Positions 5,243 through 60,492 are shown, counted from the first letter of the stretch. The stretch: DNA of 64,000 nt from Octopus sinensis (GCF_006345805.1 NC_043018.1:7936001-8000000); one strand, 5' to 3'. The notes: generated from the sequence alone by a model not told the origin. Translations and numbers: made by a program.

Positions 5243-5289
5243 CATATATCAAGACATGTCTTTAGAAAATGGACCGGATGGATCTAGTG
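5243..5289 (+). CDS. Exon A (47 nt): xIYQDMSLENGPDGSS(D)
   Basis: Long T-rich tract, tttaaacag acceptor, gtaagt donor; open in the frame that joins exon B. Confidence 0.75.
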
Positions 5290-6169
5290 GTAAGTATAGT
5301 TTCATAACATTCTGTAAAACACCAAAACTGGAACTGAACATTCAAAAGTTCTTTCAAATTTAAATTTAAAGAAAATATTTTTCTATCAAGCTAATTTATC
5401 AAATAATTATTTTCAATTTGGAGCCTGGTGCAGCCACTGGCTCTCCAGACCTCAGTCAAGCTGTCCAACCCATGCCAACACGGAAAACAGACGTTAAACG
5501 ATGATGATGATGATTCAGTCGTACTGCCAAGGATACTGTTACACTTTCTGTCTTATCTCTTTCTCACGCTCTAGTATACACACACACACAGGCCACAAAC
5601 ACACACATACACACCACGAACACACATACAGAGCATAATTTTTATCTATCAATCTATCTCTCTATCTTTCTCTCTATCTCTATCGTTCTATCTTAGTATA
5701 TATATATCCTTGTATTTTTTACTTGTTTCAGTCATTTGACTGCGGCCATGCTGGAGCACCGACTTGCAGGGTTCTAGTCAAACAAATCGACCCAGGACTT
5801 ACTTTTTTTTAAAACCTGGTACTTACTCTTTTGGTTTCTTTTGCAGAGAAGCTAAGTTATAGGGACGTAAACACACCAACACCAGTTATCTTGCGGTGAT
5901 GGGAGTACAGACACAAAGACACACACACATGCACGCACATATACGACAGGCTTCTTTCAGTTTCCATCACCAAATTCACTCACAAGGCTTTGGTCAACCA
6001 GAGGCTACAGTAGAAAACATTTGCCCAAGGTGCCACAAAGTGGGACTGAACTCAGAACCATGTGGTTGGGAAGCAAGCTTCTTGACGCACAGCCACAGGA
6101 AAGAGAGAGATAAAATATATAGATAATTAAATCACTGTATCATTATATCAACCAGGCTCTCAGATGTTA

Positions 6170-6600
6170 TACACCACTGGTCACATTGCACTTCCAATTC
6201 TTTCTTGATTGCACTACTCTTTTCCATCTTGTCCCAAATCATTTAAGAAAATCATCTTTGCATCATCATGGAGGCCTTCCATGTAGCTGTTACCAGTCTC
6301 ATGAATATCTCTCAGCAATTGCTCAAGTCCACCTATTATGAACCATGTGACATGTCCATCCCAGTGAAACTTATACTTTTGGTATTCTGCGACCATATCT
6401 TTTACTCATTCTGTTCTCAAATTACCTCATATGAGATATACTCTCACAATGATGTTCCTAGCATGGATCTTTCCATGGTCCTTTTTGTTGTAACCAATCA
6501 AAAGTGGTCCACATCTCACTTATATATAAGTGCGCAAGCAGGACGTCTATTGAAGAGACTGGCACACAGGGCCTTGTCCAGCTTTGCTTTGAGCATCATC
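6170..6600 (-). mobile_element. Degraded RTE-clade LINE RT C-terminal fragment
   Basis: MERSMLG...KFHWDGHV, with stops and frameshifts. Confidence 0.65.
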
Positions 6601-6777
6601 TGACAAGAACGCATGGCTGAAATGCTTAGCGGTATTTCGTCTGTTGTTACATTCTGAATTCAAATTCCGCCGAGGTCGACTTTGCCTTTCATCCTTTCGG
6701 GGTCAATAAATAAAGTACCAGTTACGCACTGAGGTAGATGTAATCGACTTAATCCATTAGGTCCAACACTTTAGACA

Positions 6778-7393
6778 CAAGGGGGTAGTGAAAAGTTCTT
6801 GGCTTCAAAGGTATCATGAAAGGCCTGGTTGAAGGCACAACCTTCTGAGTTCTTTTATAGGGATTAAAAAAACTAAAGACCACTACAATAAGTGGGTGAA
6901 TTTGAGAGAGGAATATCTTTATATATAAAAGACAGGTTGTGTGCTGTCTGTCTCCTACGATTTAGATTCCTAACTACTCCCACATTTTGCGGTGCAGTGT
7001 AACCAAAACCGGGTATCTCATAGTCGTGATTCATATCGAGCCCTTCTGAGTATTAGCGCGCGTCTATGATGAGTCTACGATTTTAAAAAAAATTTACCAT
7101 CAATTTTTCCCATTTCTAATGCATTTTTGGCATATATAGGGGAAGTAACTCTCTAAAAATTTATTATTAAATCTCAGAACGTAAAAAGCCACAGTACCGC
7201 CCCCCCCTTTTGTGGTTAGCCATATTGAGATGGCTATTATACTTTACATCTCTAAAAATGCTTATATAGTTATTTCCCTTACAAACCCGAGCAACGCCGG
7301 GCGATACTGCTAGTGTTGTATAAAATCATAATTAACTGATCCTCCTGTATTTGGACAAAAGCCCAAAGCCAGGATCTTTTCGGCATCCCCTCA
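6778..7393. mobile_element. Mariner-type MITE/deletion derivative
   Basis: Imperfect TIRs caagggggtagtgaaaagttcttggct / agccaggatctttttcggcatcccctca; TA on the right; internal remnant resembles a mariner transposase C-terminus. Confidence 0.6.
6916..7313 (+). mobile_element. Non-autonomous Helitron nested in a mariner-derived MITE
   Basis: a|TC...GC-rich hairpin...CTAG|t with no TSD; removing it restores gaata+tgttg. Confidence 0.8.
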
Positions 7394-8697
7394 TAAGACA
7401 GTTTGTTTCAGTTTTCCTTCTTAGAACTTCATCCATCTTCCAGGCTCATTTTATCTTTTCTCTAACTAATAGGCATAGAAGTGGCTGTGTGGTAAGTAGC
7501 TTGCTTACCAACCACATGGTTCTGGGTTCAGTCCCACTGCGTGGCACCTTGGGCAAGTGTCTTCAACTGTAGCCTCGGGCCGACCAAAGCCTTGTGAGTA
7601 GATTTGGTAGACGGAAACTGAAAGAAGCCCATCGTATATATATGTATATATATATAGGTGCAGGAGTGGCTGTGTGGTAAGTAGCTTGCTTACCAACCAC
7701 ATGGTTCCGGGTTCAGTCCCACTGCATGGCACCTTGGGCAAGTGTCTTCAACTATAGCCTCGGGCCGACCAAAGCCTTGTGAGTGGATTTGGTAGACAGA
7801 AACTGAAAGAAGCCCGTCGTATATATGTATATATATATATATATTTGTGTGTGTGTGTTGTGTGTCTGTGTTTGTTCCCCCAACATCGCTTGACAACAGA
7901 TGCTGCTGTGTTTACGTCCCCGTAACTTAGCGGTTCGGCAAAAGAGACCGACAGAATAAGTACTAGGCTTACAAAGAATAAATCCTGGTGTTGATTTGCT
8001 CGACTAAATAGGTGGTGCTCCAGCATGGCCACAGTCAAATGACTGAAACAAGTAAAAGAGTAAAAGAGTAAAGAGTAATACGTCCAAAAGTTAAACAAGG
8101 AAGTAGATAGAGCATTAACAATTCCATGGTGGCAGAAGGTGAATTGGCAGAGTCATTAGAACATCAACCAGAGTCTCTATAAAGTACCAGTTCCGTAATG
8201 GGAATCAATTCTTTGCTCCCTCCTTCCCCCTCTCTCTCTTCCCTTTTCTCCCCCTCTCTACCTCTTCACTCCTCTCACACTTCCCATTGCCCCCCCCCCC
8301 CATCTCCCCCTCTGTCTGGAAGAAATTCAAGTCGAACCCCGAGAGGGATTGGTTCCACCAAGTCTGAATGTTTTGAGACACACACAAACTGCATATCCTG
8401 TTAGAGCCTTTTGGAACCAGGAACTGAACACTCAAGGCAAGACAAGATATCCTCTTTGAGTACAGTCAATTGTAAACAAATAACCCTGGCGTCTCACTCA
8501 AGAAGATTGTTGTACTCTTGGTCTCTTATATGCCACAAAAACCAGGTAACAAGCCCAATGTCTAGTGACTGATGATGATAATAATGATGATGATGATAAT
8601 GATGATGATGATATATTCTTACAATATGTTCCAGATTACTATTACATATTCAAGTTCCATTATAATTTTTTTAAATATTTTTTTTTTTCTTTTTCAG

Positions 8698-8723
8698 ACG
8701 ATGGCTGGTCTGATGACCATTTT
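8698..8723 (+). CDS. Exon B, 26-nt microexon: (D)DGWSDDHF
   Basis: tttttttcttttttcag acceptor, gtaagt donor; phase 1 to 0. Confidence 0.8.
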
Positions 8724-9248
8724 GTAAGTATACTTTTATTTTTGTAATTAATAGCAAGGAATTTAATTATTTCATTAATTATATGTCACTTAACTTATAA
8801 TTAGACAATTATGAATTAACTGCTTGTGGTTGGGAATATATGTGATGTCATACATGGGTACACAAGCAATTTAATTGAGCATTTAATTTTACATTTAACA
8901 GTATTGTTGTTGGAAATTTGTGTTAAAGCAATAATATACATGGTTACATGACAAGAAATCTAATTTTTGTATTAGCGCCGCCTTGACTGGCTTCTGTACC
9001 GGTGGCATGTAAAAAGCACCAACCAATCGTGGCCGTTGCCAGCCTCACCTGGCACGTAAAAAGCACCTACTACACTCACAGAGTGGTTGGCGTTAGGAAG
9101 GGCATCCAGCTGTAGAAACACTGTCAGATCAGACTGGAGCCCGATGCAGCCTTCTGGCTTCCCAGACCCCGGTCGAACCATCCAACCCATGCCAGCATGG
9201 AAAACGGACATTAAACAATGATTAACAATACATTAATGATATATGCAG

Positions 9249-12458: not shown

Positions 12459-12760
12459 GCAATGCATTGCAGTTAGTTTTGCCTCTATGTAGTCTCCCTT
12501 GAGTTTAAAATCATCTTTTAGGTGGGTGGGCTTGAGTGGAATGGTAATTAGGTTTTTATGCAAATGTGTTTTGTAAATATTTTTATTGATAGGCGTAGGA
12601 GTGGCTTTGTGGTAAGTAGCTTGCTTACCAACCACATGGTTCTGGGTTCAGTCCCATTGCATGGCACCTTGGGCAAGTGTCTTCTACTATAGGCTCGAGC
12701 CAACCAAAGCCTTGTGAGTGGATTTGATAGATGGAAACTGAAAGAAGCCCATCGTATATA

Positions 12761-12794
<34 letters not shown>

Positions 12795-14055
12795 GATGTG
12801 TGTGCGTGTGTGTATATGTTTGTGTGTCTGTGTTTGTCCCCAGAACATCACTTGACAACCGATGCTGGTGTGTTTACATCCCTGTAACTTAGCGGTTCGG
12901 CAAAAGAGACCGATAGAATAAGTACTAGGCTTACAAAGAATAAGCCCTGGGGTCGATTCGCTCGACTAAAAAGGTGGTGCTCCAGCATGGCCACAGTCAA
13001 ATGACTGAAACAAGTAAAAGAGTAAAGAGAGATTAAATTTGGGGTTATGCTATTGCTTAGAATTTATTCATGCATGTAGAACTTTATAAAAAAGTCTTCA
13101 GGGTATTTTTCTTTTCACTGGGTGGATACAAGGGGTGGCAGTATTTTTGTTGCTTTTGGTATTATTGGATTCAATCTTTTTGCTTTGATAACATAAATGT
13201 CAAAGGTACAAAGTCCAATATCTAAGCCCTTAGTAATAGGGTGTGTCGACTTTGTTTCACAAAAAATGTAGCTAGTTGGTAAGTTTAGACTGATCCTGTC
13301 TTGTTATTTGCAATATTTCCTGTTTTCATTTGTAAGGTTGGGGTTATTAATCAGGCGTGTCATGGCTTTATCAGTATAGAAAGTTGTTTTCCTAGTACTT
13401 TTGATATTCATAAAAGCATACCTGTAAGGTTGTATGTTTATATGTTTCTCTTCAGGTGTTCATTGTTCATAATTGAATTACATTTTTTTCCCCATTTTTA
13501 TACATGAAAATATACATACCTAAGCGTAGGAGTGGCTGTGTGGTAAGTAGCTTGCTTATGAACCACATCGTTCAAGGTTCAGTCCCACTGCGTGGCACCT
13601 TGGACAAGTGTCTTCTACTATAGGCTCAAACCAACCAAAGCCTTGTGAGCGGATTTGGTAGACGGAAACTGAAAGAAGCCCATCGTATATATGTATATAT
13701 ATATATATGTGTGTGTGTGTATATGTTTGTGTGTCTGTATTTGTCCCCCCAACATCGCTTGACAACCGATGCTGGTGTGTTTACATCCCCGTAACTTAGC
13801 GGTTCGGCAAAAGAAACGGATCGAATAAGTATTAGGCTTACAAAGAATAAGTCCTGGGGTCGATTTGCTCGACTAAAGGCGGTGCTCCTGCATGGCCACA
13901 GTCAAATGACTGAAACAAGTAAAAGAGTATACCTATAGAATATATATCTAGAACAGGATTTGAAGAAATTTTATAAATAAACACCAATCAAATTCTGCCT
14001 CCACAGATCAAGAAGTTTAAAATTTCTATATACTAATCAAATTGTTTATAGGTTT

Positions 14056-14436: not shown

Positions 14437-16477
14437 TAACATAACTCGAAATTTAATCAATAGAAAAACCTAATTACCTCCCCATTCAAATCCACACACC
14501 CAAAGATGATTTTAACTCAGCAGAGACTATATATACATACATACATATATCTATTTGTGTGTGAGTATAATATGTATGTGTACATACACACACACACACA
14601 CGCATATATAATGTATGTATGTGTACATATATATGTGTGTGTTTGTGTAAGTGTGTGTTTATTTAGTAAGAAAATGGAGTGATTTAATGCATATAAATTA
14701 ATTTATTAATTAATTAACATTACCTACAATTGTTTCAATTTTTACACCCAATACATGTCTAATAAAATAGTTTTGCAATTTGAAGATTTTGTGTGAAATG
14801 TCTTCAGGACAATGGACATTACAGAATTTATATGTTGATCTGTCACTTTTTTCTGTATTTAAGGTAGTAAATTAGCCAAATTCTACTTAAATAAGTATAG
14901 CGTTATTTGTAAACTATAATAAAATAATTTTTAGTATTCAAATTTTAATTTTAGCTGCAATATTTTAAGTAAAAAGTTTCTTATTCTTTACTTTACTAGA
15001 ACTAATAGCTTGTCCTATACTTTTCCAGGTGTAATAACTTGTCCTGTACTTTTCCAGGTTTATAATTTTAGGAATATTACTAAGTGATGATAATATTTCA
15101 ATTTTTTTCATTGTTTAATTTAAATATATGTTGTGATTGAATTATTTGATATTCCCCATCCACACCAAATTAATGGCAGGGATTTTTACCATCTTGTTGG
15201 TTGCACAGTGGCTCACCAAAAGTTACAAACAAAAAGACCCTAAAACCATCAGTTACCAGGCTCACCCTAAGTAACCTAGATTTTGAGTCGGTGATAACAG
15301 CACTGACTGCTGCTAATTTAGATCTATCAATAATTATTCAATACAACAGTAATTATAAAAGCATATTAGATATACACAAGTTAAAATTACCCACATCCCA
15401 TTAATATAAATTTGATTTATGAAAAATCCCTTTTAATTAATTTTGAAATTTAAAAAGTAAATTTAGAATATAAGCACTTTTAACCAGTGCCTCTTCTGGA
15501 CAGCCTTACTACACGCCTTCAGGTCTGCCCATAGAGACACAGCCAAAAATGATTATATTCCTGCCCCAATAAATTTATATGCACATATCTGAAGCATATA
15601 ACACATTAATGAACTAGCCTGATTATATAATTAACTAAAAAGGAAAAGCAAATAAAGCAGAAAGCAAGTTAATTAAAGCTGAAAGAGAAAATTAATAATA
15701 AAAGTTAAACTTACCCTAATTCAACAACATATTAAAAATAACTTTATTAAATACTTAATTTAAAAAATAAAATATACAAAAGGTAAAGTCGACCTTGGTG
15801 GAATTTGAACTTGGAATGAAAAGACAAACAAAATACCTATTTCTTTACTACCCACAAGAGGCTAAACAAGGACAGACAAACGGATTAAGTCGATTATATC
15901 AACCCCAGTGCATAAATGGTACTTATTTAATCAACCTCGAAAGGATGAAAGGCAAAGTTGACCTTGGTGGAATTTGAACTCAGAACGTAGCGGCAGATGA
16001 AATACCACTAAGCATTTCACTCGGCACGCTAACATTTCTGCCAACTCACCGCATTAGAGCATAAGCATTCATTTTAGTAATATATTCTTATCTTACCGTT
16101 ATTGCTTGGGATGTTATTTCATGACATTTCACCTCATAACTTTTTTCTACTAACTTTTGTTCAATGCGACTAACGATTCTGAATTCCTCATGCATTATTC
16201 TCTCATTTAAGCCTAAGAAAAGTAGACTTTTATTTTAAAATTAAAAAATTCATGTTAACTGAAGATGAATAGGTGCCTTACTGCCTCCCTTCAGACTGCA
16301 TATATTTTGATGTAACTTTTTTTTTCTACTGAACCAAATCTCAAACTATTTATGCCAAAGTGTAGCTGAGGAGGTGTCCTCTTTGAAACTGTTAATAGTT
16401 TGCAATTTAGTTGAGAACTGAATTAGTGGTGAAGCTTGGAAGCTGCTGTGATTGACAAAATGGCAGACTTAAGAATA

Positions 16478-17035
16478 TCACCGGTCTGGAACCCCTATCT
16501 TGCCCAGGATATCAATCGTCTTGAAGCCGTTCAGCGACGTGCAACAAAGAGTATACCCTCCATCAAGCATTTGCCTTATTCTGAACGCCTTACTTCCCTG
16601 GGAATGGACACATTGAAACTCCGATGTCTGGCAGCTGACTTGGCAGACACCCATAAATTATTAACCATCTTACAAACAATAACTCTGAGCACCTTTTCAA
16701 ACTCCACCCGTCTAACGCCCGTGGACATATTTACAAAGTCAGAAAACAGCACAGCTCCCATGACTTCAGGAAACATTTTTTCACACTGAGAGTTGCTGAA
16801 GCATGGAACAAACTGCCGGCATCAGTTGTTAGTTGTCGGAGCACTGCATCCTTCAAAACTTCCATGCTTCCTGAGATTCACCAACACTACACCTGATTTT
16901 CTCCCCTCCATACACACACAAGCATGTATCTGACTCATACATTGTTCACTTCCCAGACATGTGTACATTACTGCATATACTTTATGTGCACTTTTTGACA
17001 AGTTGTGGTGCACCTGAGCACTGTATACAATAATT

Positions 17036-17075
<40 letters not shown>
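16478..17075 (+). mobile_element. CR1/L2-group LINE 3' fragment with (ATT)n tail
   Basis: SPVWNPYLAQDINRLEAVQRRATKSIPSIKHLPYSERLTSLGMDTLKLR; further copies 32651-33212, 54070-54631 (+) and ~46305-46737 (-). Confidence 0.85.
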
Positions 17076-17077
<2 letters not shown>

Positions 17078-17193
17078 TCAACCACTACCATGGTTGAATG
17101 ATAACATCTTCAAAAACTTATCGCTAATCAATACACTGCATGTGTTATGTAAATAATATTATTGATTTCATTATTACTTTATTTTTGTTTTAG

Positions 17194-17278
17194 TCTGAGG
17201 TTGATTCTTCAGGCAATGAACTGGACTATGATTATCCCACACAAAGATACCTTGAGTTAAATGAACTCAAATATCCAG
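17194..17278 (+). CDS. Exon C (85 nt): SEVDSSGNELDYDYPTQRYLELNELKYP
   Basis: ttttgttttag acceptor, cag|gtgagt donor; phase 0 to 1; no stop. Confidence 0.85.
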
Positions 17279-17344
17279 GTGAGTCTTTTTTTTTCTTTTT
17301 ACTGTATTAACATTTTATTTTTTTCATGAAACATTTTTATTTTT

Positions 17345-17800
17345 TCATGAGCAAACGAGATAGGTATGCAGTAATATATGTCTGGAAGATCCTGGTAGGA
17401 ATTGTGCCAAATTTTGGCATTGAAAGCTACACCAATGCCAGAAAGGGACGACACTGCATAGGGCCAAAGATCCCAGCAATGCCATCACACTTCAGGACCA
17501 GTTACTGCAACAGCCTGGATTTCAAGGGCCCACAGCTTTTTAATATTCTCCCAAAGAGTCTGAGGAACTTGCACAAAGTAGATGTAGCGGTTTTTAAATC
17601 AAAGCTGGACATCTTCCTGTCGAGAGTCCCAGATGAACCTACCTCACGGCAAGAGGTGCAAATGAGGGTAGCTATATCAAACTCCATTCTTCACCAAGTG
17701 CCACATATTGGAGGAGGCTCTTAGTAATAACAGTGTAGCCCAAAACGGCCGTGCATCAGCATGGTCACAGCTCTGAGCTGAAACTAGAAAGAAAAAAAAA
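17345..17800 (+). mobile_element. Second CR1-like LINE family, 3' end
   Basis: RDRYAVIYVWKILVGIVPN...KGPQLFNILPKSLRN...FKSKLDIFLSRVPDEP, followed by an A-rich tail. Confidence 0.8.
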
Positions 17801-18197: not shown

Positions 18198-19554
18198 ATT
18201 TTTTATCATAATTAATTATATTGTTTTGATTAATTGATTTTTTTCGTTTCTTTAACCACTATAATAAATTTTTGTACAATAAAAAATGACTAAATAAAAA
18301 AAAAAAATTCTACTATAAGCATAGGAGTGGCTGTGTTGTAAGTAGCTTGCTTACCAACCACATGGTTCCAGGTTCAGTCCCACTGCGTGGAACTTTGGGC
18401 AAGTGTCTTCTACTATAGCCTCGGGCCAACCAAAGCCTTGTGAGTAGATTTGGTAGACAGAAACTGAAAGAAGCCCATCTTGTATATGTATAGATATGTG
18501 TGTGTGTATATGTTTGTGTGCCTGTGTTTGTCTCCCCAACATTGCTTGACAACCGATGCTAGTATGTTTACGTCCCCGTTACTTAGCGGTTCGGCAGAAG
18601 AGACCGATAGAATAAGTACTAGGCTTACAAAGAATAAGTCCTGGGGTTGATTTGCTCGACTAAAGGCGGTGCTCCAGCATGGCCACAGTCACATGACTGA
18701 AACAAGTAAAACAGTATAAAAATTACTAAATAAAAAAAGGGTGTGACTTCTGCCGCATGCTGTATATTGCATTTATTGCACAGGCTGGACCTCCCTTAAA
18801 TCTAGCAACCTTGGAGCTTGGAAATTGTTGGATTTCAGGGAAAATACCAACAATTAGAAATTAGCTCCTGAAGTGAGCCTCTGTCTAATTCCTCACGCAT
18901 ACACACATTCAAACACTCACACATACGTAAAAGGGGTTGTTAAATCCAGGCGAATACTTTGTAAGCACTCTGTAGAATTAGACTTAACTTTCTGCTGCCT
19001 CTCCAATTTGTAAGTTCAAAATTCAAACACCAAATAAATTCACTATCAGATCACAGATTGTAATAGAAGAACACAAAACGGATGTAGAATTATGCATTCT
19101 TTAATCAGCTTATGTGTGTTTCGGATAAATTGGTAAATTGCAAAATTCTGCAATGCTGTAATCATATTAATCGATCCTATATTTGACAGATAGAGAATTA
19201 AGGGCTATCCTATCCTTATCAAAGTTATACTGCTTGGATTGGAGAACATTTTAAGGGAGATGGACTGTTGTAAAACTAACAATGTTTGACCAGTATAAAG
19301 GGTAATGGAGTTTTTTCAGCAAATCTACTTAGGAATTGTATTTTTCACATCATGATGGTATTGTACAATGATACTTAATTTCTTCAGTCTCACACGTCAG
19401 CTTGAAGAATGTTTATGGCAAAATTCCTGCCCTGTTTAAATTTTTACTGACAATTTAAATATTCGGAGAAGATATGTAGATCTAGGGTAGTCAGTAGATA
19501 ATCATTTAGATCATGATGAAAATGTCATTTGATCAGTATTAATTCTAAGTATAA

Positions 19555-21681: not shown

Positions 21682-21721
<40 letters not shown>

Positions 21722-46737: not shown

Positions 46738-46780
<43 letters not shown>

Positions 46781-47456
46781 TCTTTTACTCTTTTACTTGT
46801 TTCAGTCATTTGACTGCGGTCATGCTGGAGCACCACCTTTAATCGAACAACTCGACCCCGGGACTTATTCTTTTGTAAGCCCAGTACTTATTCTATCGGT
46901 CTCTTTTGCTGAACCGCTAAGTGACGGGGACGTAAACACACCAGCATCGGTTGTCAAGCAATGCTAGGGGGACAAACACAGACACACAAACACACACACG
47001 CATATATATACATATATACGATGGGCTTCTTTCAGTTTCCGTCTACCAAATCCACTCACAAGGCTTTGGTCGGCCTGAGGCTATAGTAGAAGACACTTGC
47101 CCATGATGCCACGCAGTGGGACTGAACCTGGAACCATGTTTTGGTTAGCAAGCTACTTACCACACAGCCACTCCTGCGCCTATATATATGCATAAATGTA
47201 ATTCTTTTCGTAAATAAATTGCACTTCATATTCAAGGCTCTGATGAAGCTATAAGTTGTTACTCCATCACTCAACCACGAGTCCCCTGAATCTTATAGCA
47301 GAAACAGTTGTAAGCTAATGGACTTCATAAGATGATCATTTACTGCTTTGCCTTTTTATTTTCTTATGACTTGTAAAATATATAATTTCATTAATTCTTA
47401 TCAAATTTTGTTAATTACTTCTTTACTTTGTTTTATTCTTTTGTTTCTGTTTTCAG

Positions 47457-47489
47457 AGAAACTGTCCACATCTCCAGCCTTGTCCCCAC
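47457..47489 (+). CDS. Exon D1' (copy of D1 in second 21.4-kb unit)
   Basis: Identical to 26033-26065. Confidence 0.6.
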
Positions 47490-48026
47490 GTACGTATGTC
47501 CCTACTTCAATCAGTTATTGTTCTAATCTTTGATGAACAAAGGTGCTATCATGTGATACCATTAATACCTAGATAACAGGAGATATGTATGATATCAGAG
47601 ATGTAGTTTTTTCTATAACATTTAAAAAACATTTTGCTACTATTTAAATGTTTACACTATATACCATGTCGACTTGTATGCTTGGTCATACAGTATATGT
47701 ATACCCCAAGCCTTAAGTTAATTTGTGCTATAATAAAGAATCTTAATAAGTCAAAAGAAGGAAATGAAATGGAAGAGATGAGTTACAAAATAATTACCCT
47801 TATCTAAATCTGGATATACCAATCTGTATACATACTTTAGATTAATTTTATTCTAGGTGTAGGAGTGGCTGTCTGGTAAGTAGCTTGCTTACGAACCACA
47901 TGGTTCTGGGTTCAGTCCCACTGCATGGCATCTTGGGCAAGTGTCTTCTACTATAATCTCAGGCCGACTAAAACCTTGTGAGTGGATTTGGTAGACAGAA
48001 ACTGAAAGAAGCCCGTCGTATATATG

Positions 48027-48059
<33 letters not shown>

Positions 48060-48575
48060 GTTTGTGTCTGTGTCTGTCCCCCAACATCGCTTGACAACTG
48101 ATGCTGGTGTGTTTACGTCCCCGTCACTTATTGGTTCGGCAAAAGAGACCGATAGAATAAGTACTAGGCTTACAAAGAATAAGTTCTGGGGTCGATTTGC
48201 TTGACTAAAGGTGGTGCTCCAGCATGGCTACAGTCAAATGACTGAAACAAGTAAAAGAGTATTTATGGAAGGAGTCCTTTCTTTCATCCCTGACATAGGT
48301 GTTGGCTTTCTCATTGGTAATGCTTTTCCTAAATAAATTGCACTTCATATTCAAGGCTCTGATGAAGCTATAAGTTGTTACTCCATCACTCAACCACGAG
48401 TCTCCTGAATCTTATAGCAGAAACAGTTGTAAGCTAATGGACTTCATAAGATGATCATTTACTGCTTTGCCTTTTTATTTTCTTATGACTTGTAAAATAT
48501 ATAATTTCATTAATTCTTATCAAATTTTGTTAATTACTTCTTTACTTTGTTTTATTCTTTTGTTTCTGTTTTCAG

Positions 48576-48608
48576 AGAAACTGTCCACATCTCCAGCCCT
48601 GCCCCCAC
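48576..48608 (+). CDS. Exon D2' (copy of D2)
   Basis: Identical to 27152-27184. Confidence 0.6.
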
Positions 48609-50571
48609 GTACGTATGTCCCTACTTCAATCAGTTATTGTTCTAATCTTTGATGAACAATGGTACTATCATGTGAGACCATTAATACTTAGATAACAGGA
48701 GATATGTATGATATCAGAGATGTAGTTTTTTCTATAACATTTATAAAAATTTTGCTAATATTTGAATGTTTACACTATATACCATGTCGACTTGTATGCT
48801 TGAACATACAATATATGTATACCCCAAACCTTAAGTTTATTTGTGCTATAATAAAAACTCTTAATAAGTCAAAAGAAGGAAGTGAAATGGAAGAGATAAG
48901 TTACAAAATGATTAGCCTTATCTAAATCTTTACACATACTTTAAAATTAATCTTATTCTGTTTATGGAAGGAGACCTTGACTTTCATCTCTGACTCACTT
49001 GTATTCACAATGGTTGTAGATTAAATGTTCAGTGAGTTACAACAAATGAGGATATAATGCTGTGAAGATAGAAACAAGTGATATTTCTCAATGTGATAAA
49101 AAGCAAAATGATTAAACCTTTAGCATTCAGATCATTCTGTCAAATGTTAAGCTTATTTATTTACTTCATTTGGAATTAATCATGCATTTTCTTGTGTCTC
49201 CAAAATTTTGATGATGTCATTACCATCATCATCATTTAGTGTCTGCTCTTCATGATGTTATGGGTTAGACCAGGGGTCCTCGACCAATTTTTATCTATGG
49301 ACCCCTTTGATTGTTATTTTATTCTGATGTTCTCCCATAGACATTCAATGCTTAAAATCTAGTTTTATAGAAACTTCTTTCGAAATTCCTATTTCGTTTT
49401 TCACACATTAACTCGTGTAAGTCGAACTATGGAAAACATTAGAGAAAGAAACCTATCTCTTTCTTGCAATACCCACCAACACAAACATCTAAATCAAAAT
49501 TTTTCATGAGGCCTCAAAATAGTATTGTGGATCCCCAATTTATTATTTTGTTGTGTAGACCCCATAAAATCTTATATGGACTCTCAGGGGCCATACAGAC
49601 CTCAGTCAAGAACCATTGGGTTAGCTGGTTTGACTGAAACTGATAAGCTGGAGAACTGTACCATGTTCCAATCTGATTTGGCTTGGTTTCTATGGCTGAA
49701 TGTCCTTCCTAATGCCAATCACTCCAAGAGTTTAGTGGGTGCCTTTTACGTATCACTAGCACCAGCCACAACTGCAATTTCACTTGGCTTGATGAGTTTT
49801 CTCAAGCACAGCAAATCACCAAAGGTCCTGATCACTTGTCATCGCCTCCGTAAGACCGAAATTTTTAGAATGACATTAGATAGAATATTTTGGGCAAATA
49901 TGGTCGGTTTAAATGCTAAAAGGTTGAGGTATTGTTGTAAGGAAATTTGAGTGTGTGCCAATATGAATATGTTGGCATGAGAATGTTTTATGCCATATTG
50001 TATTTCATTCCCCCACCCTGAACTGATATTTCCCATCGTACTTCACCTTCATCTCTTATTACATTCACCTTTACCTCCATTTCTAACCATCTCTTATTCT
50101 CCGCTCATGCTCATATAGCCCACCCACCCACTCTCCTTTTCCCCCTCCCCTGTCTATATCTTGCCTTGCACACTGAGGGGTTGCTATGATACTCCATCAC
50201 TACCAACCCATTTTCTTCCCAGCTATTCCTACCCACCCATTATATAATGCAGGGTAGCCATCTATCATCTTTGTAATAAAGCATCTGTAGTTGTTTATAA
50301 TTTTAACCTTTAAAGGTATTTTTTAATATGCTGGCCATTGCTAAAATTTTTTTTCGAAAAAATTTTATCCTACATTAAATATAAATTTAATAGTGTTCAC
50401 TTCCGGACTCTTTCACTCTGTGAGATCCTCAGTTCGAATCGCACGTGTCTTGAATGGGCTGGAGTATTTCTGTTTTGGATTTATTTGGGGTACTTAATTG
50501 TGCTCATGACTTAGTGTTTTGCTTCTTCCATGGGTATGAGTAAGTATCTCATTTATTTCTTTTGCCACATT

Positions 50572-50624
50572 TATCACTGACGAAGGGAGGGTTCTTATGA
50601 ACTAACCCTGAAATCGGTCCGATA
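50572..50624 (+). ncRNA. Copy of the 29150 hammerhead motif in unit 2
   Basis: Identical sequence. Confidence 0.7.
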
Positions 50625-53600
50625 TGGTAATAATGGAATTTTTTGGAAATTTCTGTCAGCCTTTTTTTCGAGTAGCGTGCGTATTGTAAAAAATTATATG
50701 GTTATGGACAATATGTCCAATTTTCGGCATATGTGGCATTAGAAATTTTTTCGTTTGCCCTTATTTATAAGTTGTTTATAATTTTAACCTTTAAAGGTAT
50801 TTTTTAATATGCTGGCCATTGATAAAATTTTCTTTCAGAAAAATTTTAACCTACATTAAATATATATATATATATATATCATTATCATCATTGTTTAATG
50901 TCTGCTTACAATACTGGCATGGGTTGGACAGTTTTACAAGAGCCAACCAGGTAGAAGACTACCCCAGGCTACTGTGTCTATTTTGGCATGGTTTTTACAG
51001 CTGGATGCCCTTCCAACTGTCAACCACTTCACAATGTGGACTGGATGCATTTTAAGTGGCACCAGCACCAGAAAGGTCACCAACTAACTTGCAAGGCAAG
51101 AGGGGAAGGGGCATTGGAAGAGGTGATCTTGTGTCAGATGATGAAAGGTGAGAGTGTGATGGAGAGACAGAAACAGTGTCTTGCTAAAGAGGAGGAGGTG
51201 ATCATGTATCAGATTATGAAAGGTTAGAGCAGTGGTTTTCAACCAGGGTTCTGCCAGTACAGTCCAGGGGTTCCGCAAGAAGTTACAAAACTGCTAAAAT
51301 CGGCAGTAATTTTAAATTCTCCTCTGCAGGTATGTGTGCATAAAACTATTAAATTATTGCACAGGGGTTCCCCGAGCCAGGGAATGCTTCCTTGGGGTTC
51401 CGCTCCAGCAAAAAGTTTGAAAAGCACTGGGTTAGAGTGTGACAGAAAGTGTATATTTATATGTCTATTAGTGTATATCAGGGTAAATCTTTCTGCAGTG
51501 ATAAGAATTTTTTTCTTTTGTCTGATCTCCATTTATCTCATGGTTGTAGGAAATTTCACCGTAAGCAGTTTTACTGTAGGAAAAATTCACTGTAAAAAAA
51601 AAATAAATAAATTGCAAAAGAAAAAATTACAATGGTAACTTCATCAACAAACCTACTAACTGGAAAAAAGTCATTTCTTTATAATGAGTTTTCTTATTTT
51701 TAGTGTGACTCTTTTATGACAAAACTTCTTACGGCAAATTTTCCCATGGCAAATTTTTTACAGTGGATTCCCACAGAAAATTGCTTACGGAGAATTTTCC
51801 AGACACGTTCACCTACTAAGTCAGACACAAACTGATAACTTAGTGTTTTGTCAATAACCTACTTGGTATGAATGTACTTGACTTTATATACCTCATCACC
51901 GTAGTTACAAATTAAGTTACATCCTTTTGAGTTAACAAATTTGTTTGTTTTGTTTTTTTTATGGCTTTTTAGCAATTATTTTTTTCTGTTATTTTTCTAA
52001 GCAAGATACTATAGCAACTTGCACACACACACACACACACACACACATTTTAAACTGTTGAACCAAATTCCAAAGAAACGACCAACTTTCTGATGGGCAA
52101 ACCTTGACTCCTCATCACACCTAAAACCACTGGCCCCTATCTCCAATTCTTCTATTTGTATTGCAATGATTCCTGATGCTCTGAAATAACATGCTTCCCC
52201 TACTAAGACTAACCAAGACTAACCATTATACTCTATGTTAAAAAATTATTGATTCTTTATCTTGCATTTTGTGAACTAATAGCACTATTGATTACAGGTT
52301 TTCAATGGATCAATCACTGATCCAATACATTTGTGACAGCAAGACACTAACAAGGGTGGAGTTGGTAGTTTACTTCTGTTTGGTGCCTGATGCCAAAAAT
52401 CAAAGAAGTTACATGGGAGATGGGATTGAAAAGACTAAACACAAAGACTTAACGTTTTCATTAAACCCTTTGATTTTTTTTTGCACTTCCTCTTGAAAAG
52501 GAAGTAAAGGTGGGGTGGGGGCTGGAAAATGGCAATGATATAATAATGAATTTATTTATGCAGTGCTCAGGTGCTGTACTACAACTCATCAGAAAAAGTA
52601 ACCAAAACTGCATGAACGGTACGTAGAATATGCACAGGAAGTAAACAATGAATGAGTCGTTTAGAAAACAAAAAAGGACAAAAAAAAAAAAGAACAGGTG
52701 TACTGTTGGTGATGATGGTGATGATGATGATGATGATGATGACAAAGACAGCAGCACCAACAAAAGCAACTTCAGTGATTGATTCTCAGAAAGGCAAGAG
52801 GCCAGAAATAAGTGGCAGGGAGAGTAACAGTCAATTAGATCACCCTCAGTATGTGACTGGTACATTATTTATTTACTCTGAAAGAATGAAGGGCAAAGTT
52901 GATCTTGGTAGGCTGTAATTTTAAATATGCTAAATATTTTGTTGGACATTGTAAAGATTTGACCAATCTAATACAGTGGTGGTGGTGGTGGTGGTGGCAG
53001 TAGTAGTGGTAGTAGTAACGGCAGCAGCATAGTTGTAGTAGTAGTAGTAGTAGTAGTAACAGCAGCAGCATAGTAGTAGTAGTAGTAACAGCAGCAGCAG
53101 CAGCCGTTCAAGGATTTTGACCTGGAGATTTCCATTTCCAGCAACTTCGAGGGGCCACCTCCCAGTGGTGTTGGGCGTCAACAAAGAGCCCTCGACTACA
53201 ACAAGACGACCAAAGTTTTTTTTTTCTTCCAAGGTCTGGTGTCTCCCGCCCCTAAGCCCTAGACCATCACCTAATCACCCTTACCCGCCTTGTTGCTTAA
53301 CAACAACAGCAGCAGCAGTAGCAGTAGTAGTTGTAGTAATAGTAGTAGTGCTCTCTCCAAGCAAATTCGTTACAAAGTAGATGAGAATGGTGAAAATAGA
53401 AAGGAGACCAGTTGAGAAAAAGACAGAGAGAATTTGCCGTCCTTGATGAGGATAATATTGAACTTGTGAGATTCCTTCATTGACACTAGGTGGAAGTTCT
53501 TCATCAGAAACCCTGTATCATCATTTATTCGTAATATTGTGCAATACGTTTTTACCTCGTTTGATTTTTGTCGCTTGATATTTGTGTAACCCTCCACACT

Positions 53601-55794
53601 TGGTGCGTTTGTGGCGAATAAAAGAAACCATCATCACCACCACCACCTACCTCCACTATTACTGTGGCCACCACTACCATAAAGCACTGCCTCCTAACCT
53701 CACCACCCATCACCACCACCATCACCATTGTCCTCCTACGTCTCCCCAAGTTGCTCAGGTCATCAACATCAGTTTACACTTATTTCTTTCATAATTTTCT
53801 CCACCAAAATTTAGACATTTTTGGAGAGAGAACAGAGGATTAAAAACATTTGGATGTTTCTCTTAATGAGGGGAGGCACAGTTATTTTTTTCCTATTGTC
53901 TATATCTAAAGGCTAAATGTTGTTTTAAAAAAACATCAACAAATTTGTTTTTTGATTCAGGAAGACTGGAAGATTGTTAGGAAGCAGCTATGATAGCCAT
54001 GAATGCAGTTAATAAGGAACTAAAGTAGTTATAAGTAACACATATACATAGAACCTATTTAAATTTCCATCACCAGTCTGGAACCCCTATCTTGCCCAGG
54101 ATATTAATCATCTGGAAACCGTTCAGTGACGTGCAACAAAGAGTATACCCTCCATCAGGCATTTGCCTTATTCTGAATGCCTTACTTCCCTGGGCATGGA
54201 CACATTGAAACTCCAATGTCTGGCAGCTGACTTGGCAGACACCCATAAAATTATTAACCATCTTACAAACAATAACTCTGAGCACCTTTTCAAACTCCAC
54301 CCGTCGGCATATTTACAAAGTCAGAAAACAGCACAGCTCCCATGACTTTCGGAAACATTTTTTCACGCTAAGAGTTTCTGAAGCATGGAACAAACTGCCA
54401 GCATCAGTTGTTTGTTGTCGGAGCACTGCATCCTTCAAAACTTCCATGCTTCCTGAGATTCGCCAAAACTACACCTGATTTTCTCCCCTCCATACACACA
54501 CAAGCATGTATCTGACTCATACACTGTTCACTTCCCAGACATTTGTACATTACTGCATATGCTTTATACGCACTTTCTGACAAGTTGTGGTGCACCTGAG
54601 CACTGTATACAATAATTTCATTATTATTATTAAAATTTTGGCCCTGTTACTATGGAAGAGATTCATCATCATCATTGTTGTTGTTGTCGTCATCACTGCC
54701 GCCATCATCATCATCATCATTTAACGTTCTTGCTTCCATGCTGGCATGAGTCAGATGGAATTTTTGTGGGCATGAATTTCTACAGCTGGGTGCCTTTCCT
54801 GACACCAACCCTCACTTGTCTCCAAGCGATGTAATATTTCCTCATGTTTCTCAGGGCAAACTGGAAAAGAACTACATCGCTTGTATAAAGGTGACATCTC
54901 ATAATGTCAGCCATCTAACATTATGTCAAGATCAGAGTCAAAAAAGGTAAAAAAGGTAAAGACCCCTTTTGGTCAGGAATGATCATGGGACTACACCTAA
55001 AAAGTTCCCGTCTGAGGCACAAGTCTGGGCAAGGTTGTTTATGGAAGACCAGCAGCTGCCCACACATATCAACCACTCCATGCCACTGATGTTATCCAAG
55101 GGAAAGGCAAAGGCCAATACAACTTGGCATCAGTGACATTGCAACTCATTTCTACAGCTAACATGAATTAAAGTGTCTTGCTCAAGAACACAACACTCGG
55201 CTCAGTCTGAGAATCAAACTCACCACCACATGATTGTGAGCCTGACACTTTAACCACTGAGCTATGTGCCTTCACATAAAAGCACTGCCTATCAAGACAA
55301 GAGTATACACCAATATGCGATGGGCTTCTTTCAGTTACCATCTATCATATCCACTTAAGTGGAGGCACGTGGCTTAGAGTGCTGGTCTCATGATTGCAGG
55401 ATTGTGGTTTCTGTTCCTGGACAAGGCAATGCGTTGTGTTCTTGAGCAAAACACTTCATTTCATGTTGCTCCAGTCCACTCAGCTGGCAAAAATGAGTAA
55501 TCCTGCTATGGACCAGCACCCCATATGGAAACTTGGAAACCAGGCTTTATGAGTTGGTATGACTCGAGAAGGTAACTTTACCTTTTCATATCCACTTAAG
55601 ATACTGTAGACAACTTGAAGCTACAACAGAAGATGCTTATCCAATGTGTTACACAGTGAGACTGAACCTGAGACCACCTGTTTGGGAAGTAAACTTCTTA
55701 ACCACACAGCCATGCCTGCATCAATGTAAGAAATTATGAATTTTAAATTAATTATGTAATAATTAAAATTATCATTTTCAATTTATGTTCACAG

Positions 55795-55889
55795 GTAACA
55801 ACATAATACCACCTCCAATTCCTCCAATACGTAAAAAAGATAGCCAGCACATAACGAGGGAACAGAATAAATTTAGTTCAGAGGCAAAT
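55795..55889 (+). CDS. Exon E1' (copy of E1)
   Basis: Identical to 34376-34470. Confidence 0.65.
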
Positions 55890-57034
55890 GTAAGTTTATT
55901 TATGGTTGTTGTAGTTTTTGTTCAGCCCTGGTCAGCTCTGATAGAGAAGATTAAGGACCAAAGATATTCCAGCCATGACTGCTTCACCTTTTTCTGTACC
56001 CAGGATTTGAGTATTTAATACATCCTTCCTTTTTCACGACAATCGGTTGTGATTTTGGACAATAGGGTGTGATTTTGTTTCTTATTTCTAGCACATCAAA
56101 CAACCACATTATACTGTCCTCATCCAAATGCAGCACATGTTTTCACCGGTGCAGTCTTCTTTCTTGCGCACTACGCTTGATTCCTTTTATGCTCAGGTTT
56201 TCTTTCAGCATATTTATGCTACGTTGTTCATGTACGTTAACATTGCACATCAAACAAATCAAGCTCACTTTATTTCTTTCCAGTCTTCTCATGCCCTCTG
56301 CATTCAAGGCCCATGTCTCACTACCATGCAGCACTGCAGTTCTAACACAAGCCTCATACAATCTGCCGTTAACTTTTAGAGAAATCCTTTGTTGCCAACA
56401 GGCTCCAGTCTTGATCTGGCAGAGTTTCTACAGCTGGATGCACTTCCTAACACCAACCACTCCAAGAGTGCAGTGGGTGGTTTTATGTTCCACTAGCACG
56501 AGGGCCAATCAGGCGGTACTTGCCTTGACATGAAATTTCCCGGTTTCCATAGGATAGATATTGCCCACCGGTATGAGGTGTCGGTCCATAGCAGGATTAC
56601 TCAGTTTTGCCAGCTGAGTGGGCTGGAGCAACATGAAATTTGTTCGGCCCTTTTCTTACTCTGGTTACAATTCTTTCAGAGGAACTACCTCCCTTGTTAA
56701 TTACATTTCCAAGGTAACAAAAGCTTCCAACTACTTCTAGTGAGCCATCTGAGCGACTCAGAGAGTCTATTTCCTGAGTCTGCTTCCTGTATGCTCATAG
56801 TGTATCTACTGCTCCAGTACATCTATCACATACAAAGTTTATGTTCTCTGCGAGTCTGTCTGTGACTCCATCATGTCACTCCTTCTGGAATCTTTGTTAG
56901 CAGCTATATGTAATCAATAAGAATCAAAATGTATGAGTGGCTGTTCTCCCACTTTGTGGGCACACACGCACACACATAAATTGTTTATAATGAATGTGAC
57001 ACATGGTGTTGGTTAAAAAACCAACAGATATAGG

Positions 57035-57111
<77 letters not shown>

Positions 57112-60100
57112 GTAAGTGTGTGTGTATATGTTTGTGTGTCTGTGTTTGTCCTCCCAACATCGCTTGACAACCAGTGCTGGTGTGTTTACGTCCCCATAAC
57201 TTATCGGTTCGGCAAAAGAGACCGATAGAATAAGTACTAGGCTTACAAAGAATAAGTCCTGGGGTCGATTTGCTCGACTAGAGGCAGTGCTCCAGCATGG
57301 CCACAGTCAAATGACTGAAACAAGTAAAGAAAAAGAAAAGAATATGTACTATAGCAATGAAACAAAAAATCTGTTGCCACACCAGTTTTATATATCATCA
57401 ACATCATCATATAATGTCCGTTTTCCACGCTAGCATGGGTTGGACAGTTCAACCGGGGTCTGAGAAGCCAGGAGGCTGCACCAGGCTCCAGTCTGATCTG
57501 GCAGTGTTTCTACAGCTGGATGCCCTTCCTAACGCCAACCACTCCGTGAGTGTAGTGGGTGCTTTTTACGTGCCACTGGCACAGGGGCCAGATGAGGCTG
57601 GCAAACGGCCACGATCGGATGGTGCTTTTACATGTCACCGACACGGATACCAGTCAGGCGGCGCTGGCAACTAACACGTTTGGATGGTGCTTTTAACCTG
57701 TCACTGGCATGGGTATCTTAACTACAATTTCCATTTGATTTTCATTTTGATGTTGGTGTTAACGTACCTGACTCAACAGGTCTCCTCAAGAACAGCGGGT
57801 CACTCTATGATCCAAGGTTAGCACAGCAGGCCATCCTACGAGCCATGGACTCCCTTCATTTGTCGGGTCTTCAAAGTCACAGCATATCTCCAGAGGTCTC
57901 GGTCTTTCGTCATAGCCTCTGTGAGGCTCAACATACGAAGGTCATACTTGACCACCTCATCCTCGTATTTTTTTTACATACACGCACACATGCACATACA
58001 TATTCACGCACACACACAGACACATAATTATGAGAGGAAAACACTAAGCATGAATTCAGTATTGCTTTTATTTCATCTGTTACACATGTTTCTGCAATTA
58101 ATGTTTGATGATGGCAAATGATAAATGCAATTCATAAAGAACATTTGATCACACAGAGGCAAGGTGCCGCCAGTTTGATAATTTTGTCATGCACCTAACA
58201 CAAGCATCTGTTTCCACTTTGTGTGTGTATATATGTATGTGTGTATATGCATGTCCTTTCTGTTTTAATCTTTTCATGTTTATACATACTGGAACATAAA
58301 AGTCAATGTGGAACTCTTAAGAAAACAGTAGCAGTCATACATCTGTTTCTACACACATATACTATCTATATACATAATTCAAAGTCAGAGGGTAAGAAAG
58401 TAAAACCTTTGTCTATATATGTATATATATATATATATGCCGGTGGCACATAAAAAGCACCATTTGAGCGTGATCATTACCAGCATCGCTTTACTGGCAC
58501 TTGTGCCAGTGGCACATGAAAGACAACATTCAAGCGAGGTCGTTGTCAGTGCCACTGTTGTTTGTTCCTTCTCAAGCCATGCCTGGCTCATAAGGGCCGG
58601 TTTCCTTGGCGTATAGGTTCCCCACCTGGACGGGACGCCGGTCTGTCGCAGGTGAGCTCAAGATACAGGAGGAAAGAGAAAGAGAAAGTTGTGGCGAAAG
58701 AATCAGCAGACATTTCACCATTACCTTCTGCCGGAGCTGCATGGAGCTTAGGTGTTTCGCTCATAAACACACACATCGCCCGGCCTGAGATTCGAACCCG
58801 CGATCCCTCGACCGGGAGTCCGCTGCTCTAAACACTAGGCCATGTGCCTCCACTCAGTGCCGCTAGACTGGTTCCAGTGCAGGTGGCATGTAAAAAACAC
58901 CATTTGAGCATGGCCGTTGCTAGTACCGCCTGACTGGCCCTCATGCCGGTGGCGCGTAAAGCACCTGCTACACTCTCGGAGTGGTTGGTGTTAGGAAGGG
59001 CATCCGGCTGTAGAAACTCTGCCAAATCAAGATTGGAGCCTGGTGCAGCCATCTGGTTCACCAGACCTCAGTCAAATCGTCCAACCCATGCCAGCATGGA
59101 AAGCGGACATTAAACAATGATGATGATGATGATGATGATGATATATATATTATAAAATAATGAAGGTAACTAAACGCAATATAAAACTAAAAAGGAAAAA
59201 ATTCAATTGTCACTAATGGTGCAGGGTAGCACCTACATTGCTAGAAATAAAAGCTTTAAAACCCTTAAAGCTGCAAGGAAACACTTTCCATAGATTGACA
59301 GGGGAGACAATAGCGAGATCACTATACAAGTCTAGTTTTGTTTAAGATTAAAGCTCATCAGTGGTGACTATTCCATCGCTGGATGGTTTGGCTAAATCCT
59401 GACTGTCAGTGGTATATATATATATATATATCATCATCATCATCATCATCGTTTAACGTCCGTTCTCCATGCTAGCATGGGTTGGACGGTTCGACCGGGG
59501 TTCTGGGAAGCCAGAAGGCTGCACCAGGCTCCAGTCTAATCTGGCAATGTTTCTACAGCTGGATGCCCTTCCTAACATATATATATATATATGTATATAT
59601 TGTCATCATCATAAATCTCTCTATATAAAGCTGAAGTTGTCTGTGTATGGCAGGTTTGGTAGCCTTCAACTAACACTATCTCCTCCGAGACCCTGCGGCA
59701 CAAGTTGACCAAAATTGAGAGTATGATAGAAGAAGGTGTGCTCTTCCTTCAGTAGAAGAAAAAATTCAAATTGGACCATGTTAACACCAAAATTTATTTA
59801 CATCAAAAAGGTGTTTTTTTTCTATGAAAATCCCTATTTTTTACGATTTTTTGACTGCTGTGTCGTCATTTTTCGGTGTATTTCAACCAGAAAAATGTTC
59901 ACTTAAAGAGAGTAACAAGCTACATAATGCAAAATGTTTACTTTTCAAAAATTCCAATTCTAAAGAGTCGAAAAGAAAACAAGCCCAAGCAACGCTGGGC
60001 TATACTGCTAGTATGTATAGATAAATATTATATGTATGTATGCACGTGAAAGGATCAAAATAGAAAGGACACACTAATTTGTAGATGCAGAAAAAGACAG

Positions 60101-60407
60101 GCAGGTCATGACTGGAAAGCTGGAATTCCTTTAATTATAGGTTGTTGACTCAATCAGAGTGACCTAGGGCTAAACTACAATAACAATATTATAAATCAAA
60201 TTAACTGAAAAGCATTGGAGTATCAAACTAAACTTATTTAGTTTCCATTCTTCAAGTGCCCGGTTCAAATTTTCCCTGGCTTCACTTGATTTTCCAGTGT
60301 AAAGGGTTGATCAGAATCAATTTAATTTGCAATTTATCTCCAAATTTGGGAAACTCATGGAAAGGGACAAAATCATTATCGTATATATTATTTTCATTTC
60401 TTCTCAG

Positions 60408-60492
60408 AGCAGACAATTTTCCAAAGATCCTAATAAAGCCCCTGAAAGTTTATCACAAGCATTCTCAAAACTGAGACCAGTTGCAACTAGTT
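60408..60492 (+). CDS. Exon F1' (copy of F1)
   Basis: Identical to 38993-39077. Confidence 0.65.

Follow-up and report, generated by a model that had tools for sequence, protein, structure and literature searches.

A 64,000-nucleotide stretch of the Octopus sinensis genome (GCF_006345805.1, NC_043018.1:7936001-8000000; the whole stretch is called the window below) carries on its + strand a chain of small exons that probably encodes the disordered N-terminal-to-middle scaffold of an SLP-76/BLNK-like adaptor, the SH2 exons of which would lie downstream of the window. Its ortholog in Octopus bimaculoides is LOC106881179, a RefSeq 'uncharacterized protein' (XP_052831819-22) that UniRef lists as an 'SH2 domain-containing protein' (A0A0L8FU37). 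As judged from sequence, the architecture is that of the SLP-76/BLNK family, since an acidic tyrosine stretch is followed by proline-rich modules and then by a single C-terminal SH2 domain. The SH2 sequence leans the same way, while membership is not proven.

A sequence-only reading of the window had proposed an unannotated adaptor gene built from in-phase microexons with tyrosine and SH3-ligand motifs. The motifs and exons are as it described them, all on the + strand: IYQDM begins at 5244, GWSDDHF at 8703, DYDYP at 17224 and RYLEL at 17245, and the SH3 ligands follow as SPALPPR (27166 and 48590), PPPIPPIR (34390 and 55809) and PPPIPPSR (43452). Every motif sits inside a short open segment preceded by a pyrimidine tract and AG and followed by a GT donor. 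The exons thus bounded measure 26-103 nt, and successive exons are phase-compatible. The arginine of SPALPPR is indeed assembled across an exon junction (C + GT at E1/E2). In a six-frame translation of the window PPxPPxR is confined to these exons, and PxxxPR alone is not rare, with about ten more matches outside them. As to size, X2 has 26 nt (20 nt in O. bimaculoides) and E1 33 nt, and the majority of the window exons, at 85-103 nt, are small rather than 'micro'.

The ortholog was reached in two steps. A word search with the spliced peptide returned one relative, the 133-residue fragment UPI00071D1655, and a full HMMER scan with this fragment led to XP_052831820.1, isoform X2 of LOC106881179. 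The locus used for comparison, a 44-kb stretch of O. bimaculoides (GCA_001194135.2, CM046622.1:12725212-12769509; L001), is syntenic with the window across successive blocks at 85-92% nucleotide identity. Seven window exons (X2, X3, E1, E2, E3, M2-E2 and M2-E3) are orthologous in L001, with AG/GT kept at 14 of 14 boundaries and, as the sole indel among them, an in-frame 6 nt in X2, the ortholog of which retains CAG...GTAAGT. Residue identity is about 72% over 175 codons. This upholds the proposed multi-exon gene, which is contained in the RefSeq models from X3 onward. The O. bimaculoides locus differs from the window in having a single E1 (L001 12959-12991), a single 21-kb block, an intact M2-E3, and DDGYS where the window has DYDYP. 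Its longest isoform (363 residues) maps on L001 to 15 coding exons in 24 kb, several of them of 21-33 nt; two microexons, one of the DYVLPVN and one of the DYVVPVN type, have 26 nt, and further ones measure about 21-30 nt.

The RefSeq coding sequence of the ortholog begins at an internal methionine of X3 and leaves X2 outside. This model is probably 5'-truncated, because neither species has a stop in the X3 frame between the internal methionine and the acceptor, and a conserved X2 precedes X3 by 3.3 kb. A 519-N assembly gap (L001 5503-6021, on CM046622.1) stands exactly at the expected position of the X1 ortholog, and the start at the internal X3 methionine is probably due to it. The description 'unannotated' therefore holds in part: the ortholog is annotated from X3 on, but only as an uncharacterized protein and probably in truncated form. 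The four RefSeq isoforms, X1-X4, differ exactly by omission of an E1 cassette and an E2+E3 cassette, E1 being the optional element that separates isoforms X1/X3 from X2/X4. Both cassettes (33 and 198 nt) begin and end in phase 1.

The sequence-only reading had expected an SH2 domain downstream, and the ortholog has one at its C-terminus (residues 246-329 of 352; Pfam E=1.2e-10). Its best single-domain sequence match in the PDB is the SH2 of mouse BLNK (2eo6; 39 bits, E=4.5e-9), and the SH2 domains of PLC-gamma rank after it at 32 bits or less. In an AF2 model of the ortholog, residues 1-240 are of low confidence and the SH2 alone is folded (pLDDT 82-89). The top Foldseek match of the model is again BLNK 2eo6 (E=2e-6, root-mean-square deviation 1.4 A), tenfold ahead of Syk, SHP2 and ZAP-70. 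An alignment also places in the octopus SH2 the block YN[IF]P[IV]R...[YF]ALG.EK..E of BLNK and CLNK. N-terminal to the SH2, the resemblance is one of motifs. Acidic Y-x-x-P sites occur as EDDEG-NYIVP in both species and as NDK-VDYVLP and EEDG-DYVVP in the ortholog, and a central SH3-ligand region with TSPALPPR, PPPIPPIR and PPPIPPSR is common to both. Of the docking motifs proposed earlier, then, the SH3 ligands and the acidic Y-I-V-P are conserved between species, whereas DYDYP is not.

Among known systems the nearest is vertebrate BLNK (SLP-65), which shares with the octopus protein the order of acidic tyrosine region, proline-rich motifs and C-terminal SH2, an acidic DYVVPV site, and PxxxPR-type motifs. 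Three such motifs in BLNK bind CIN85/CD2AP selectively, and Grb2 more weakly (PMC3181483); in the octopus they are known at the motif level. No basic/leucine-zipper N-terminus of BLNK type was seen in the octopus protein, which, unlike BLNK, places its motifs in tandemly repeated exon modules, and it cannot be taken for granted that a mollusc protein acts in antigen-receptor signalling. SLP-76 (LCP2) and CLNK belong to the same family as BLNK and have acidic YxxP sites and a proline-rich centre; CLNK-like SH2 fragments were recovered by a profile of octopus and BLNK sequences. No counterpart of the SLP-76 SAM domain was found in the octopus gene, and the two differ in the Gads-type site. P-x-x-x-R spacing, as in P-x-x-x-R-x-x-K, is absent from E2, and R-x-x-K, present in the window in M2 only (RSKK), is not conserved, O. 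bimaculoides reading RKKQ. In echinoderms the Patiria miniata 'B-cell linker protein-like' XP_038070561, confirmed by reverse-transcription PCR, combines SAM, proline-rich region and SH2 (PMC11593052). Compared by description only, it resembles the octopus protein as an invertebrate adaptor with a proline-rich middle and a C-terminal SH2, and differs in its N-terminal SAM domain. In the library searched, a literature search that included the family's phyletic spread found no publication on BLNK/SLP-76-type adaptors in molluscs, and apart from the Patiria miniata study it gave nothing of use. The octopus gene is a new member, unnamed in O. bimaculoides, beside invertebrate proteins already named BLNK-like in RefSeq, and not a new kind of system.

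Table 1. Exons of the proposed adaptor gene, large repeat copies and short interspersed element (SINE) copies in the window, with orthologous positions in L001
Feature	Position	Strand	Size and product	Remarks
X1	5243-5289	+	candidate exon, 47 nt, (x)IYQDMSLENGPDGSS	CAG acceptor, GTAAGT donor; in phase with X2
X2	8698-8723	+	microexon, 26 nt, D-DGWSDDHF	ortholog L001 6670-6689, 20 nt, WSDSHF
X3	17194-17278	+	85 nt, SEVDSSGNELDYDYPTQRYLELNELKYP	ortholog L001 9974-10058
E1a	26033-26065	+	cassette exon, 33 nt, (E)KLSTSPALSP	one of two copies from the 1.1-kb duplication
E1b	27152-27184	+	cassette exon, 33 nt, (E/Q)KLSTSPALPP(R)	optional in O. bimaculoides isoforms
M1-E2	34376-34470	+	95 nt, NNIIPPPIPPIRKKDSQHITREQNKFSSEAN	ortholog L001 17416-17510, 28/31 residues identical
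M1-E3	38993-39095	+	103 nt, SRQFSKDPNKAPESLSQAFSKLRPVATSCKEDDE	ortholog L001 19165-19267; RefSeq protein has CKEDDEG
M2-E2	43438-43532	+	95 nt, (G)NYIVPPPIPPSRSKKSAHKPREQKKFTSEAN	ortholog L001 24228-24322; M1-E2 paralog, 79% nt identity
M2-E3	44190-44285	+	96 nt as assembled (97 in O. bimaculoides), SRKFSKDPNKGPE/NLSQAMSKLRPVTPGKKDE	frame broken, A4->A3
E1a'	47457-47489	+		base-identical second copy
E1b'	48576-48608	+		base-identical second copy
M1-E2'	55795-55889	+		base-identical second copy
M1-E3'	60408-60510	+		base-identical second copy; proximal donor 60492
Tandem repeat copy 1	25312-46736		21,425 bp, E1a...M2-E3	intronic ends, phase-symmetric
Tandem repeat copy 2	46737-64000			cut off at window edge
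SINE copies, first part	328-715, 1088-1485, 3166-3573, 4787-5177, 5717-6096, 7655-8062, 12589-13024, 13521-13931
SINE copies, second part	18315-18718, 25361-25758, 26430-26837, 42778-43205, 45393-45797, 46786-47182, 47854-48261

The scaffold is built of a recurring module. An E2-type exon opens with x-[YN]-[IV]-[VIL]-P, to which modules M1 and M2 add PPPIPPxR. The next exon, of E3 type (SRxFSKD...LSQAxSKL...), has an acidic patch at its end. Because E3 ends acidic and E2 starts with the tyrosine, every E3/E2 junction spells acidic-Y-[IV]-x-P (KEDDEG/NYIVP, and in the ortholog GKNDK/VDYVLP and SDEEDG/DYVVP). The series goes on in O. bimaculoides with a 26-nt microexon, VDYVLPVNS (L001 25621-25646), a third E3-like exon, SRKHCKEN...SDEEDG (L001 27070-27159), which shares 37% identity with M1-E3, and a DYVVPVNK microexon (L001 27799-27822). 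A tblastn search with the C-terminal 237 residues of the ortholog found no DYVLP, DYVVP or SH2 exon in the window. The sequence downstream of window position 44670, where the VDYVLPVNS microexon would be expected, is not orthologous to L001 25211-25870, and this comparison suggests a rearrangement breakpoint near 44670.

Serial amplification of the modules had been claimed, and the modules are genuinely repeated, in three layers. The M1/M2 duplication is present in both species (about 80% nucleotide identity) and, by this comparison, old; between the paralogs, conservation is no higher in the exons than in the introns. A 1.1-kb tandem duplication (25774-26387 against 26893-27506, 96% identical and separated by a SINE) produced E1a and E1b. 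By the same comparison it is lineage-specific, O. bimaculoides having one E1. The third layer is the 21,425-bp repeat, in which 25312-42589 matches 46737-64000 at 99.43% identity over 17.3 kb, and for which O. bimaculoides has one copy of the block; real duplication and assembly artefact are here at roughly even odds.

An assembly artefact, in which two haplotypes, or one locus, were placed twice in tandem, is close to an even call. The true gene would then have one E1-E2-E3-M2E2-M2E3 block, and only the M1/M2 and small E1 duplications would be real. Between the two copies, 24 substitutions stand beside 43 indel events, and the 1-bp indels are nearly all run-length changes, an error profile rather than one of divergence. 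Because such an excess of homopolymer indels is the signature of long-read consensus error, the copies may be one sequence assembled twice. A 7.5-kb stretch without any substitution and the single copy in O. bimaculoides point the same way, and the loss of one A from an A4 run in M2-E3 shows that errors of this kind exist in the assembly. Against this stand the junction at 46737, which has no N gap, and some 16 true substitutions between the copies. The smaller E1 duplication shows moreover that the locus does duplicate. A real duplication would be tolerated and read through, since the unit begins and ends within introns and is symmetric in phase (G + AG = Glu at M2-E3/E1a'); the right end of copy 2, with the far junction, lies beyond the window. 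Only tentatively is it entertained that the repeat is genuine and of very recent origin, and that it duplicated a six-exon cassette in frame within a protostome BLNK/SLP-76-like scaffold with linkers evolving at pN/pS above 1 (the proportions of non-synonymous and synonymous differences). A minus-strand open reading frame (ORF) derived from a long interspersed element (LINE) reads differently between the copies (41043-41474 against 62461-62895) through 1-bp homopolymer indels alone, and illustrates how such indels corrupt frames in this assembly.

Several observations weigh against an adaptor of the SLP-76/BLNK type at this locus. The spliced peptide and UPI00071D1655 match no Pfam family, and the 64-kb window contains no SH2, SAM or PH exon. 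The gene's 5' end is probably outside the window, and no SAM-like segment was seen by eye among + strand stop-free segments of at least 40 residues at window positions 1-5300, from which shorter exons could escape. The alignment behind the fold model consists of BLNK and CLNK sequences, and the Foldseek ranking is biased accordingly. Pairwise comparisons with human BLNK are leads rather than tests. On the side of kinship, the octopus SH2 is 30% identical to that of human BLNK (E=1e-12), and the match of GSDEEDGDYVVPV in the ortholog to GLLEDEADYVVPV in BLNK, colinear with that of the SH2, reaches E=0.06. In the same comparisons the disordered peptide of the window has no significant similarity to BLNK, the best match, DDGWSDD/EEQWSDD, having E=1.4; the resemblance of W-S-D-D to BLNK that had been pointed out is thus not significant. 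DYDYP has been lost in O. bimaculoides. The candidate exon X1 (IYQDM) lacks corroboration and is neither supported nor refuted, because the orthologous position is the N run in L001; it is the weakest member of the chain, its pyrimidine tract deriving from a 32-bp tandem repeat that adjoins a SINE. Compared with O. bimaculoides, M2-E3 as assembled is one A short in an A4 run and shifts into a TGA. Finally, exon identity (89.5%) is about equal to that of the flanking introns, and only short motifs look constrained.

Part of this evidence would also suit an SH2 adaptor outside the true SLP-76/BLNK family, whether specific to lophotrochozoans or of the SHB/SHD/SHE/SHF or SH3BP2 type, in which the motif grammar has arisen by convergence. 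Such an origin is a good deal less likely than family kinship, and has points in its favour. In a multiple alignment the SH2 is just 23-33% identical to those of BLNK and CLNK, and the SH2 domains of PLC-gamma, which match the C-terminal tail as well, trail BLNK by about 7 bits or less. Outside the SH2 no homology to BLNK was detected, DYVVPV of the ortholog being the lone near-match, and neither a SAM domain nor a BLNK-type N-terminus was found. Short linear motifs converge, and the linkers here turn over at a neutral-like rate. Against convergence, BLNK comes first both by sequence and by fold, the family-specific block YNxPxR...ALGxEKxxE is present, and the WSDD, DYVVPV and SH2 matches are colinear with BLNK; moreover, none of the 46 PDB matches at E<=0.01 is a chain of the SHB family or of SH3BP2. 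Searches with the C-terminal half and with the octopus and BLNK SH2 profile recovered only the ortholog and vertebrate BLNK/CLNK fragments, and no other invertebrate relative. As for the SH3BP2-like alternative that had been offered beside SLP-76 and BLNK, the PH domain it requires was not seen in the window or in the RefSeq ortholog, the latter probably 5'-truncated. The SLP-76/BLNK-like guess itself is largely upheld by the layout and by the SH2, which leans towards BLNK, but not by similarity elsewhere.

The adaptor reading also has to accommodate the pattern of sequence change. Over the 175 aligned codons there are 47 non-synonymous and 8 synonymous differences between the species (pN 0.114, pS 0.072, ratio 1.58); the 47 of 55 non-synonymous changes compare with a neutral expectation of 79%, and the difference is not significant. 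For these codons and two species, purifying selection thus provides no overall proof of coding. Fully conserved while the linkers diverge are TSPALPPR, PPPIPPIRKK and EDDEGNYIVPPPIPPSR, and RYL[EQ]LNE is nearly so. This pattern fits a disordered scaffold acting through linear motifs and is not by itself proof of coding; the case for coding is made instead by the RefSeq models, the conserved motifs and the retention of splice sites and reading frames. A pseudogene or non-coding adaptor remnant, decaying in O. sinensis, would account for the broken M2-E3, for pN/pS at or above 1 with exons about as identical as introns, and for the many transposable-element insertions in the introns, and is nonetheless very improbable, since the lone frameshift is a homopolymer miscount of a kind abundant between the near-identical copies, the remaining exons are open with all splice sites kept across about 10% divergence, the SH3- and SH2-ligand motifs are perfectly conserved, and RefSeq has the ortholog as an intact model with four isoforms. 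The reading of M2-E3 as a pseudo-exon was rejected: its defect is a run-length change (A4->A3), explained by the same class of homopolymer error, and the frame downstream of the missing base still agrees with the O. bimaculoides protein.

If the gene encodes such an adaptor, motif rules suggest how it might work. Acidic Y-[IV]-x-P sites have the look of Syk-type substrates and of ligands for the SH2 domains of PLC-gamma, Vav and Nck. SH3 adaptors of Grb2/Drk and CIN85/CD2AP type would be bound constitutively through the PxxPxR and PxxxPR motifs. A kinase of the Syk/Src type would phosphorylate the acidic Y-[IV]-x-P sites, which could then dock the SH2 domains of PLC-gamma-, Vav- and Nck-type effectors, and the C-terminal SH2 may anchor the assembly to a receptor or partner that is itself phosphorylated. 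How many docking sites each molecule has could be varied by skipping of the symmetric cassettes and, in this lineage, also raised by DNA duplication, through the second E1 and possibly a second six-exon block. In condensation of SLP65 with CIN85, valency is the main determinant (PMC10923291). Valency tuned by exon duplication had been proposed for the octopus gene. The largest amplification, absent from O. bimaculoides, may be an artefact, and valency is probably also set by splicing, because the RefSeq isoforms skip the same cassettes.

Two further features of the exons bear on splicing. Each E3-type exon has paired in-phase donors, GTAAG and then GTTGGT or GTTAGT, spaced 18 nt apart in M1 and 15 nt in M2 and kept in both paralogs and both species (window 39074-39101 and 44268-44291; L001 19246-19273 and 24797-24818). 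With the proximal donor at 39077, assumed in the sequence-only reading, M1-E3 has 85 nt; the distal donor at 39095 makes it 18 nt longer. The O. bimaculoides RefSeq models take the distal, weaker donor (equivalent to 39095 and 60510), which adds CKEDDE. Use of the proximal donor would remove the acidic patch (KEDDE or KKDE) that precedes the tyrosine of the next exon. In addition, some intron flanks of the small exons are more conserved than the exons themselves, at 94% 3' of X2, 97% 5' of X3 and 97% 5' of E2 (window 8724-8843, 17074-17193 and 34256-34375). These flanks could be splicing control elements for short exons.

The surrounding DNA is AT-rich and eukaryotic (GC 34-42%) and dense in microsatellites, LINE fragments and copies of a SINE, and holds one retroelement. 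The SINE, about 400 bp long, occurs in some 15 copies in both orientations, with pairwise identities of 72-92% in the listed alignments, and one copy supplies the sequence immediately 5' of the candidate exon X1. A composite insertion at 21478-25757 has no counterpart in O. bimaculoides (L001 12476-12703). It contains minus-strand retroelement ORFs (22407-23870 and 23864-25111), the first with a weak RVT_1 match and, by eye, a GIY-YIG-like stretch, so that it is possibly Penelope-like. The insertion is flanked by inverted repeats of about 790 bp (21478-22255 and 24779-25567, 97% identical), the outer 200 bp or so of which are SINE sequence. The 21.4-kb repeat begins within its right end, at a (TA)21 tract at 25313. 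Exon X3 is flanked by two LINE-tail-like fragments (16478-17073 and 17337-17799), which carry + strand ORFs (16436-16789 and 17326-17724) and are missing from O. bimaculoides. A transposable-element origin of X3 was rejected, the exon block being orthologous between the species where the LINE-like flanks are not.

In practical terms, homopolymer errors, and possibly a spurious 21-kb duplication as well, affect the assembly of the window, and the O. bimaculoides model is probably 5'-truncated at a gap. If the 21.4-kb duplication is real, it adds four SH3-ligand motifs (two E1 copies, PPPIPPIR and PPPIPPSR), doubling the count of the block, and one acidic Y-I-V-P. Together with cassette skipping it would then amount to an experiment of nature, possibly polymorphic, on scaffold valency and hence on condensate or signalosome threshold in cephalopod cells. 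The gene illustrates how small, phase-symmetric exons let the number of docking motifs shift by splicing and by DNA duplication. Above all, a cephalopod gene that is 'uncharacterized' in RefSeq gains a name and a testable function as an SH2 adaptor of BLNK/SLP-76 layout. Should the assignment be true, octopus cells have the scaffold by which vertebrates connect Syk-family kinases with PLC-gamma, Vav and Grb2, and the gene would offer an entry point into hemocyte or receptor-tyrosine signalling in cephalopods.

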